Shown here piece after piece: positions 24,882 through 50,369 of a stretch of DNA of 64,000 nucleotides (positions within the stretch are counted from its first letter, which is position 1; each line of letters begins with the position of its first letter). The stretch lies in NCBI GenBank assembly GCA_950097015.1, contig CATNEN010000033.1, positions 5,208,001 through 5,272,000 of the forward strand, read 5' to 3'. The translations under genes and the position numbers were made by a program. Source of the DNA: Macrostomum hystrix (Eukaryota > Animalia > Platyhelminthes). The notes below the pieces were generated by a model, which saw nothing but the letters and a program-made list of their open reading frames with translations, was not told the origin of the DNA and made no database searches.

Positions 24882-27800
24882 ATGCTGACTCTGCTGCTGT
24901 TGACTGCCTTCTGCTGTCTGGCAACTTCAGAGAACGACTGCAGCGTGAGTTTGTGGGGAGCAATCTTAACTTTCGAAATTGCGACTCTCTTTAGAGAGAT
25001 TCTCCTTGGTGCGATTCTCCTTGGTGCGATTCTCCTTGGGGCGATTCTCCTTGGGGCGATTCTCCTTTTCTTCGAGCGATTCTTCTAATTGGAGCGGTTC
25101 CACTAGGTGCGTCTCTCCTTGGTGCCGATTTTCTTTAGGGCTTGGAGCGATTCTCATTCGAGCGATTCGTGGGACGATTCTCCTTGGTACGATTCTCCTT
25201 GGTGCGATTCCCCTTGGGGCAACTCTAGTTGGGCCGATTCTCCTAGGGCCGATTCTCTTTAGGCCGATTCTCCTTGGGGCAACTCGCCTTGGGCCGATTC
25301 TCATTTGGGCAACTCTCCTTGGGGCAACTCGCCTTGGGCCGATTCTCATTTGGGCAACTCTCCTTGGGGCAACTCGCCTTGGGCCGATTCTCATTTGGGC
25401 AACTCTCCTTGGGGCGATTCTCCCTTGGCTTAGAGCTATTTTCCTTGGGGCGATTCTCTTCGATTCCTTGGGCCGATTCTCTTTGGGCTGATTCTTCTTG
25501 TGGCTTGGAGCGATTCTTCTTGAAAGCCAAGATTCCGACCCGCACAGTTTCCAGTATCGGTCGCTCCGGTTTCAGAATCCAGGGCTGTGTCATGTGGGGT
25601 CACCAGGGAAGCAGGAAGCGAAGAGTGACTCTCGTTTCTGTGCTCTGTGCGCGATGGAACTGATTGCTGGTTTAGCGGGGCCCGCTGCTAGGAGATGCAG
25701 ATAAATATTTCTTTAGACAAACAAGCAGTTATCAAGTGATAGCGAGCCAGATGACAGATAAAACATGCGAATCGGCACAGCCGCCACAAAACACCGCAAA
25801 CACAGCCGCGCAGTGAGCTTTGTAAACTGTGCGAACAAAGTTTCAGAATTTCACTTGTGCAACAATCATCTATCAGGAAAAGTAAAGGAAATGAATTAAC
25901 AGCACCTATCTATCTATCTATCTATCTATCTATCTATCTATCTATCTATCTATCTATCTATCTATCTATCTATCTATCTATCTTCGTTAGGTTCGCCAGC
26001 ATCGTTAGGTGTGCATTTGTAAATGCATTATCCTGTCTGTGCGTATTGGCATGCAAAGAACCATACTGACAATGAGTGTAGGGCCTCTGACTAGCTTTTA
26101 TTTTTAACAATATCAAGCCCACCGACTCGTGCTTTGTTTGTGGGAATTTTTCCCCGTTCAAGAAGTTCAGCTCCAATTTCTAAAGTGAATAGTTCAGTCT
26201 GCTTCCCAGTGTTTACAATCGGCACAATGGGGCTCAACAGCCCCCCACTTGCATCCGGGTCCTGGCTGGGACGCGAATTTTTTTTAAAAAGGTCTTGGCT
26301 AATTAGAGCGAGTCAGTGGGACAATACTCGCACATACTATCATAGCTAGCTAATGGAAAGAAACTCTCAAATTCTTGTGCACCTGTCTGTTCACAATGCG
26401 CTGGTTTATGGTCAACAAATTCGGATCCCTAATTATTGAGCAATTGGACTGAAAGCGAATCACAATGAGATGAGGAGGCGTTCGAAGTTTCGCCAAGATG
26501 TGCTCAGATTTTGCACCCACTTCGTGTCTAAATGTGGGCTGTGGCCTGTTGGCCGAGGAATAAAGAATAGGAATGGGAGAGAAGGGAGAAGGAATGGGAT
26601 AAAGAGGAGAAGGAATGGGATAGAGGGGAGAAGGAATGGGATAAAGAGGAGAAGGAATGGGATAGAGGGGAGAAGGAATGGGATAAAGGGGAGAAGGAAT
26701 GGGATAAAGGGGAGAAGGAATGGGATAAAGGCGAGAAGGAATGGGATAGAGGGGAGAAGGAATGGGATAGAGGGGAGTAGGAATGGGACAGAGGGGAGTA
26801 GGAATGGGACAGAGGGGAAAAAGAATCGGACAGAGTGGATTAGGAATGGGATAAAGGGGAGAAGGGATGGGAGAGAAGGGAGAAGGAATGGGATAGAGGG
26901 GAGAAGGAATGGGATAGAGGGGAGTAGGAATGGGATAGAGGGGAGTAGGAATGGGATAGAGGGGAGTAGGAATGGGACAGAGGGGAAAAAGAATCGGACA
27001 GAGTGGATTAGGAATGGGATAAAGGGGAGAAGGGATGGGAGAGAAGGGAGAAGGAATGGGATAGAGGGGAGTAGGAATGGGATAGAGGGGAGTAGGAATG
27101 GGATAGAGGGGAGTAGGAATGGGACAGAGGGGAAAAAGAATCGGACAGAGTGGATTAGGAATGGGATAAAGGGGAGAAGGAATGGGATAGAGGGGAGTAG
27201 GAATGGGATAGAGGGGAGTAGGAATGGGATAGAGGGGAGTAGGAATGGGACAGAGGGGAAAAAGAATCGGACAGAGTGGATTAGGAATGGGATAAAGGGG
27301 AGAAGGGATGGGAGAGAAGGGAGAAGGAATGGGATAGAGGGGGGAAGGAATCGGATAGAGGGGAGTAGGAATGGGATGGAGGGGAGTAGGAATGGGATGG
27401 AGGGGAGTAGGAATGGGATGGAGGGGAGTAGGAATCGGATAGAGGGGAGAAGGAATGGGATGGAGGGGAGTAGGAATGGGATAGAGGGGAGTAGGAATGG
27501 GATAGAGGGGAGTAGGAATGGGATAGAGGGGAGTAGGAATGGGATAGAGGGGAGAAGGAATGGGATAGAGGGGAGAAGGAATGGATAGAGGGGAGTAGGA
27601 ATGGGATAGAGGGGAGTAGGAATGGGATAGAGGGGAGTAGGAATGGGATAGAGGGGAGTAGGAATGGGGTAGAGGGGAGTAGGAATGGGATGGAGGGGAG
27701 AAGGAATGGGATAGAGGGGAGTAGGAATGGGATAGAGGGGAGTAGGAATGGGATAGAGGGGAGAAGGAATGGGATAGAGGGGAGAAGGAATCGGATAGAG

Positions 27801-49558: not shown

Positions 49559-50369
49559 ATGACGATGCGGCCTTACATACTGCTGGTCCAGCTGCTGCGG
49601 CCGCTGCTGCTGTTGCTGCAGGCTTGGCCGAGCAGTTGTTATCGAGTCGATGAATATCACGCATGCGGCTGGGGTGTCAACAGCAAAAACCTGACCTTCG
49701 CCGCTTATTCAGGTGTGGCATATACCCAGCCTGAAGCTTGCGAGACCAGCAGCATGGGCGAGACCAAGCAGGACTACCCAGACATCCCAACTGACAACAG
49801 GAGACGCCTGTGCCCGGACCTGTTCTGGCCAATCGAGAATCCTGCGCCAACGCTGCCACGGCTGCGCTACGAGTCCGGCTGCCAGTGCAACACGAGCCAG
49901 AACCCGGAGCTAAACCTGCACATGCAGTGCCGGACCTTCCAGCTGCCCGTGGCTTCTCTGGAGCCCGTTGGAAACAGCTCGACTCTCCGGCTGGTAACTC
50001 GACTGATGGGCGTCGGCTGCGCCGCCCTGCTCAGCCTACCGCGGTCTCGCCGGAGCCCGGAGCCGCTAACTGGCAGCGACCTGCGCCGCCTCAATGCCAT
50101 GCTGGGCTGCGGTCGCTCCGTCTACCAGCCCGTCAGCTGCAGCGCCATCGCCAACCAGTCGCAGCCGGCGTTCGTGATCAACGCTGATGACGACCGGGTG
50201 CCGCGGCTGCTGCCGGACGTTCGCTGCCCGTGCGACGGCCAGGAGCTGGTGAAGTTGCCGCTCTGGGTTCTCAAGCAAAAGAAAGACGGGCAGCATGGTG
50301 CAGGAAATCGCTAGTGTTGGGGTGTCTTGTGCAGTTTGTGTAACGTGGAAGCTGCTTTGCTCACTCTGA
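49559..50369 (+). CDS. Secreted tandem (two-domain) IL-17-like protein B; intronless, 269 aa after removing one extra A near 50282
   Basis: Signal peptide; domain 1 RLCP...LPRLRYESGCQC...QCRTF...MGVGCAA; domain 2 PAFVINADDDRVPRLLPDVRCPC..LVKLPLWVLK..(shifted frame)SMVQEIASVGVSCAV; clear paralog of 36482-37283. Confidence 0.68.

Follow-up and report, generated by a model that had tools for sequence, protein, structure and literature searches.

The window, by which we mean the whole 64,000-nucleotide stretch of Macrostomum hystrix DNA that was analyzed (contig CATNEN010000033.1, positions 5,208,001 to 5,272,000), is eukaryotic, intron-bearing and rich in satellite repeats. We analyzed a group of genes within it that could constitute an IL-17-type cytokine-receptor system: a five-exon gene on the plus strand for a putative single-pass receptor, and two paralogous genes for secreted cysteine-rich proteins, which are referred to as the ligands L1 and L2. 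The receptor gene (+) and L1 (-) are positioned tail to tail, and L2 is found further on without an adjoining receptor.

The first exon of the receptor gene (24825-24944, +) starts with an ATG, encodes a long n-region followed by a hydrophobic core, as in a signal peptide, and ends at a phase-0 gtgagt donor. It is followed by an intron of around 7 kb, of which 5.4 kb (26568-31980) is occupied by a satellite with a 21-bp unit in ~258 copies (92% matches) and an extreme strand asymmetry (GC skew near +0.97). The satellites at the equivalent place in Macrostomum lignano are different, with units of 17, 34 and 30 bp. Exon 2 (32029-32095, +; phase-1 donor) encodes the Cys/Ser/Asn-rich beginning of the ectodomain, which continues in exon 3 (32248-32817, +) and exon 4 (32903-32989, +), the latter having 29 codons and phase 0 at both ends. 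Finally, exon 5 (33092-33829, +) specifies the juxtamembrane part of the ectodomain, a poly-Leu transmembrane segment (~33266-33337) and a cytoplasmic tail of 163 amino acids (33338-33826) that runs to the stop codon; the reading frame of this tail is backed by the G+C content at third codon positions (GC3). All junctions are GT-AG and the phases are compatible throughout. We infer the joining of exons 1 and 2 (24944 to 32029) from splice signals and phase only, and the product would be a type-I single-pass protein with an ectodomain of ~330 and a cytoplasmic domain of ~160 amino acids. Within exon 3 the frame shifts by +1 past 32627, a position that was obtained both by GC3 tracking and by alignment to the M. 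lignano exon, and the extra base is most plausibly located in the AAAA run at 32637-32640. A 46-nt GT-AG intron, which would also repair the frame, was rejected because the M. lignano exon runs on and is homologous across this stretch.

Ligand L1 is encoded on the minus strand (37283-36648, continued at 36643-36485) and L2 on the plus strand (49559 to ~50278, continued at 50280-50369). Both comprise a signal peptide and two Cys modules, giving proteins of ~245 amino acids with two divergent modules per chain, and they are 38-45% identical. The alignments with the paralogue and the M. lignano orthologue make clear that the breaks in the two open reading frames (ORFs) are changes of frame and thus not introns. 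More explicitly, L1 carries an extra base at ~36644-36647, where it reads CGG CTT G CCG versus CGG GTG CCG in L2, and L2 has an extra base at ~50276-50282, within caaaagaaag. Eleven Cys residues are conserved among L1, L2 and the M. lignano ligand at 36-49% overall identity, and all three possess signal peptides. The ligands are genuine secreted proteins, conserved and rich in Cys. The division of the chain into two modules is held with moderate confidence. In L2 the modules are separated by the sequence RSRR, which is absent from L1 and from the M. lignano ligand, and given this lack of conservation the cleavage of the ligand into two parts is probably not the rule.

Between the receptor gene and L2, part of the receptor's tail exon is also present as an inverted copy (38060-38434, -). 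Over ~300 bp this copy is nearly identical to the original, from which it departs by an insertion of 4 nt and a deletion of 21 nt, and it borders on a (GACA)n repeat. This repeat (38426-38548) is located at the breakpoint of the copy, and in M. lignano (L002 2121-2588) a (GACA)n repeat marks the 3' end of the receptor gene. The two positions together suggest that the repeat mediated the fragmentary duplication of the tail. Most of the architecture had been recognized in the original prediction, which was made from the sequence alone: the gene with signal peptide, ectodomain, transmembrane segment and cytoplasmic part is present, as five exons and with refined coordinates, and so are the two paralogous secreted Cys proteins, the recent partial copy of the cytoplasmic exon and the frameshift in both ligands, which amounts to one extra base each. 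The prediction had further stated that the receptor is hidden by a ~7-kb intron; the splice signals agree with that split, but the frameshift in exon 3 had been missed.

The order of the genes VPS51-ORC3-RPL35a-receptor-ligand is collinear between the window and M. lignano. RPL35a, a single-exon gene in the window, encodes a protein that is 91% identical to its M. lignano counterpart, with every other match at 78% or lower. In M. lignano the block occurs in three copies (L001-L004; NIVC01002767.1, NIVC01002245.1, NIVC01002230.1) with a synonymous divergence (dS) of ~0.02-0.12, which we take to agree with the partial duplication that the genome of this species is known to have undergone. A second M. 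lignano RPL35a paralogue is located in another neighbourhood (L005-L007). The receptor-ligand pair is found tail to tail at all three homeologous loci, so that the arrangement is not a matter of chance, and the synteny in a related species that had been proposed as a check was thereby borne out. Receptor and ligand are ~0.9 kb apart in M. lignano, with (GACA)n in between. Since the whole neighbourhood is collinear between both species, the persistence of this adjacency tells little about function.

In M. lignano the ligand (L002:905-1720) is encoded by an unbroken ORF of 272 amino acids, signal peptide included, which is continuous across the sites of both the L1 and the L2 frameshift. It is complete and intact at two loci, and at the third (L003) it is intact over the 182 captured residues, after which the locus ends. 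Receptor exon 3, a single open frame in M. lignano, and the last receptor exon are intact at all three loci; the last exon is 53-56% identical between the window and M. lignano, and in the core of the tail the two show no differences. Furthermore, a short exon that resembles exon 2 was found (L002 5644-5591) and a counterpart of exon 4 is present in P0123 (UniRef100_A0A1I8IY66). The latter is a 937-amino-acid UniProt model at L002-L004 that consists of RPL35a, a non-coding stretch, receptor exons and the ligand in antisense, and that is named after the ribosomal protein eL33. The M. lignano receptor has been hidden by its merger into this chimeric entry. The M. lignano annotation provides no separate gene model for either receptor or ligand, and the ligand is uncalled altogether; one direct consequence of the analysis therefore concerns annotation.

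Between the window and M. lignano the divergence approaches saturation, which renders dN/dS values unreliable. For this reason the close M. lignano copies were used to estimate selection. Among the three ligand copies, 9 synonymous versus 4 non-synonymous changes were counted, where neutrality would predict 73% non-synonymous (binomial p=0.0015). The pairwise dN/dS ratio (omega) was 0.12-0.20 for the ligand and 0.18-0.40 for receptor exon 3. For the last receptor exon it was 0.5-1.2, based on very few changes that are mostly outside the core of the tail. In M. lignano, purifying selection acts on the ligand. As receptor and ligand are only ~50% identical between the window and M. lignano, versus ~90% for the neighbouring genes, these omega values imply that the pair is fast-evolving and yet constrained, at least in M. 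lignano.

The identity of the ligands was approached via the three MEME motifs that were reported to be common to 89 IL-17 proteins (PMC4517768). Module 2 of L2 matches motif 1 without gaps at 9 of the 16 specified positions, which makes it the top scorer of ~128,000 six-frame windows across the 64 kb, ahead of a runner-up at 7/16. The corresponding score is 8/16 for module 2 of L1 (P=0.0015) and likewise 8/16 for the M. lignano ligand, where it is the top match in the 20-kb locus. Against shuffled sequences, P was at most 0.0015 for these matches. The signature of module 2 reads F-x-I-N-A-D-x-x-R-x-P-R-L-x-P-D-V-R-C-P-C, followed by V-G-V-S-C-A, and module 1 of the M. lignano ligand contains L-P-x-x-R-Y-E-A-R-C-Q-C, which fits the second half of the same motif. 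When V-G-V-S-C-A is compared to published motif 2 (...V[GA]CTC[VA]), the V, the G, the second Cys and the A are kept, and the first Cys is replaced by Val. It would fit a cystine knot minus one disulfide, as the knot types T1B and T1C have lost one of the knot disulfides (PMC11087794). In addition, IL17 (PF06083) was the sole Pfam family that matched, with 19.1 bits (E=0.0018) for L2 and 12.4 bits (E=0.22) for the M. lignano ligand, on module 1 in both cases. In a protein-language-model atlas the IL17 clusters ranked first for L2 (0.89) as well as for L1 (0.63), followed by NGF and Spaetzle, and Noggin clusters were also found close behind. Taken together, it is likely that the ligands are IL-17-like.

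For the receptor, the atlas neighbours listed for the cytoplasmic tail were almost all TIR, TIR_2 or SEFIR clusters (0.80-0.84), with SEFIR lower in the list, and the recognition value of the tail query (2698) was above the level for known families. In our own reading, the hydrophobic and helical segments of the tail appear to alternate in the order expected for a TIR or SEFIR domain. The invariance of the tail core between the window and M. lignano points the same way. We therefore consider the chances even that the tail is TIR/SEFIR-like, with SEFIR and TIR not separable. It has been reported that many true IL-17 receptors are missed by the FN3 and SEFIR domain models, and that the FN3 domains are too degenerate to be detected in around half of them (PMC11087794); accordingly, missing domain matches are not decisive for the receptor.

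Given these observations, there is an even chance that the conserved Macrostomum locus specifies a type-I receptor with a TIR/SEFIR-like tail together with secreted IL-17-like proteins made of two cystine-knot-type modules. In such a system the two modules of a ligand chain would pack together like both subunits of an IL-17 dimer, to yield a covalent pseudo-heterodimer; this ligand would engage the neighbouring receptor, and the receptor would then signal via its TIR/SEFIR-like domain. The fold of both proteins, their pairing and the signalling are what we infer. That the L1/L2-type ligands and the receptor would be a cognate pair, for which the tail-to-tail adjacency is the argument, is proposed tentatively. 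Equally tentative is the broader picture in which Macrostomum would have single-chain IL-17 cytokines, each paired tail to tail with a dedicated, fast-evolving receptor of the TIR/SEFIR type, and in which these pairs were duplicated as units.

A number of observations weigh against the proposed cytokine-receptor system. With respect to the ligands, motif 2 scored 4-5/11, which is not significant, and motif 3 (LN[SC]VP[IV]YQxILVLR[RK]) reached 5/14 without gaps (P>0.5), the resemblance being limited to a gapped one (M-P-I-W..V-L-K). Both Pfam IL17 scores are below the gathering score of 24 bits, and neither L1 nor any of the isolated modules gave a match. The comparison with Pfam IL17 that the original prediction had suggested thus fell short, with L2 at 19.1 bits against the cutoff and L1 unmatched; of the predicted IL-17 signature, the motif 1 part in module 2 stood, but the family profile did not bear it out. 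No homologue was recovered by word-based searches, for which L2 and the receptor tail served as queries, or by an exhaustive profile search across 1.84 billion representative proteins. Sequence searches against the PDB, with single sequences and with profiles, yielded nothing or noise for both ligand and receptor. The AlphaFold2 model of the ligand, built on a three-row alignment, had a mean predicted local distance difference test (pLDDT) value of 32.5 and was unusable. The atlas scores of ligands and tail are all below 0.9, the level from which the atlas counts a neighbour as anything beyond a lead. The arrangement of the Cys residues departs from the canonical one, with 11 conserved Cys in all and only one in the last strand of each module in L1 and the M. 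lignano ligand (module 2 of L2 has two), and the likeness between module 1 and module 2 is marginal (z<=2.65).

On the side of the receptor, no SEFIR, TIR, FN3 or IL17R match was obtained from Pfam at E<=10 with the receptor pieces of the window or of M. lignano, PADLOC gave no match for the tail, and a two-species profile of the tail found nothing in the PDB. The AlphaFold2 model of the tail, made from a single sequence, was unusable as well (pLDDT 37). The tail appears to lack the known Trp-containing SEFIR features, and the conserved P-G loop after its second strand is presumably more TIR-like, as it resembles TIR box 2. The predicted SEFIR/TIR character of the tail is retained on the basis of the atlas neighbours, but the profile searches did not support it. 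To this can be added that the sequence upstream of the M. lignano receptor was searched for a signal-peptide exon and none was found, and that each of the three window genes (receptor, L1 and L2) carries one extra base. Other searches were equally empty: a scan of metagenomes with the M. lignano ligand as query turned up no relatives, the whole window had no match in Rfam, and exact-product look-ups of the window ORFs returned no record.

The extra bases bring in the strongest of the alternatives, which is independent of the others: the window genes may be real pseudogenes, each of which was hit by a recent insertion of 1 nt, of a family that is functional in M. lignano. In comparison to M. 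lignano, three frameshifts occur in ~3.1 kb of coding sequence of the cluster versus none in ~3.9 kb of neighbouring housekeeping exons (p ~0.09). The insertion in L1 is outside any homopolymer, L1 is the most diverged copy, and a degraded fragment of the tail is found nearby. Yet there are no stop codons and no further indels, and past each shift the frame remains open, with conservation that extends to the native stop. Moreover, two of the three shifts are within AAAA runs and all three are +1, as is frequent for errors of the consensus sequence, and the satellite-rich nature of the region hampers polishing. Weighing these points, we lean slightly to assembly errors as the source of the three extra bases, and real inactivation of the window genes has a little less than an even chance.

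A second alternative holds that the ligands are lineage-specific secreted Cys-rich proteins next to an unrelated orphan membrane protein, in which case the likeness to the motif and to TIR would be coincidental and the adjacency a mere reflection of the collinearity between congeners. This would account for the lack of a significant profile, PDB or database match for any part, for the non-canonical Cys pattern and for atlas scores that are within the range sometimes reached by shuffled sequences, and it has the complete collinearity of the VPS51-ORC3-RPL35a region in its favour, which makes the adjacency nothing special. However, the ungapped match to motif 1 is an outlier in two independent loci, and it is found in a Cys protein with a signal peptide and in the correct order with respect to the C-terminal V-G-x-S-C-A. 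Furthermore, IL17 ranked first for both paralogues in spite of their limited identity, and the tail query passed the recognition level of the atlas. We consider a double coincidence of this kind unlikely.

The remaining alternative, that the ligands belong to another branch of the cystine knots (Spaetzle, neurotrophin, Trunk or PTTH-like) and that the receptor is of a TIR type (Toll/IL-1R-like) with a novel ectodomain instead of a SEFIR-type IL-17 receptor, could draw on the clusters of NGF, Spaetzle and Noggin that follow IL17 closely, on the predominance of TIR and TIR_2 over SEFIR among the neighbours of the tail and on the apparent likeness of the P-G loop to TIR box 2. It is in line with the reported intertwining of the IL-17 and neurotrophin pathways (PMC11087794), but it is more improbable still, considering the clear outlier match to motif 1 (D..R.P..L.EA.C), which is specific for IL-17, the fact that IL17 is the only Pfam family seen, and the ectodomain, for which no LRR or Ig match was obtained from Pfam.

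The other features of the window can be described briefly. Between L1 and L2 there is a forkhead gene (45385-47528, -) with an intron-split Forkhead domain (E=4e-17); its C-terminal region is long and rich in Gln, Gly and Ser, and GC3 frame tracking was too noisy there for the detection of frameshifts. A small secreted Cys-containing ORF is located at 40106-40470; it had been labelled as eclosion-hormone-like, a label for which no Pfam match was recovered at E<=10. Downstream of L2 follow a Ty3/gypsy-type long terminal repeat retrotransposon (53515-58744, -), of which the gag (zinc knuckle), protease, reverse transcriptase and integrase ORFs are apparently open, and then a gene for a flavin adenine dinucleotide (FAD)-dependent oxidoreductase-like protein (60855-63513), the first ORF of which enters a tandem repeat that is translated as a repeated YDYRGLFYGGVK unit.

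In the literature searched, no paper was found on an IL-17 ligand, on a SEFIR receptor or on a cytokine-receptor pair of any kind in Platyhelminthes. If true, the system proposed here would give this phylum its first described cytokine-receptor system, and it would provide a testable cytokine axis for the signalling that accompanies wounding, infection and regeneration in flatworms. M. lignano is a tractable model for regeneration and stem-cell research, for which RNA interference and transgenesis are available. In addition, the ligands would represent a natural case of a dimeric cytokine that has become a single chain.

A comparison with known systems shows where the locus agrees with these and where it departs from them. 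Like the invertebrate IL-17s (PF06083; T1 knots, PMC11087794), the ligands have a signal peptide, a motif 1 ahead of C-x-C and a C-terminal V-G-x-x-C-A strand; the fast evolution is shared as well, and the loss of one disulfide is known from T1B and T1C. Unlike these, the ligands of the window are below the Pfam threshold and have two modules per chain, most modules have a single Cys in the last strand, the loop from C-x-C to the next strand is much shorter, and the conserved N-terminal C-G-W-G region and the segment between the modules are without IL-17 counterpart. Multiple IL-17-type domains per predicted protein have been reported for the sea-urchin models SPU_022838.1 and SPU_019350.1, with two or three IL-17 domains (PMC4517768). 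Those models are unverified and from a deuterostome, whereas the Macrostomum tandem is one uninterrupted ORF and is found in two species and at three M. lignano loci.

The IL-17 receptors, with their double FN3 and SEFIR organization, resemble the receptor of the window in that the latter has a predicted type-I single-pass layout, with an ectodomain of ~330 amino acids and a domain of ~160 amino acids of a putative beta-alpha type soon after the transmembrane segment; its gene moreover adjoins that of an IL-17-like ligand. They differ from it in that the window receptor matches no FN3, IL17R or SEFIR profile, has a short tail that ends with the domain, and has neighbours that are more TIR than SEFIR. 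Finally, Spaetzle-Toll and Trunk/PTTH-Torso combine a cystine-knot ligand with a single-pass receptor, as is proposed here, and the tail of Toll is a TIR domain. In contrast to these, the receptor of the window has neither an LRR ectodomain nor a kinase, and the motif of its putative ligand is of the IL-17 type.

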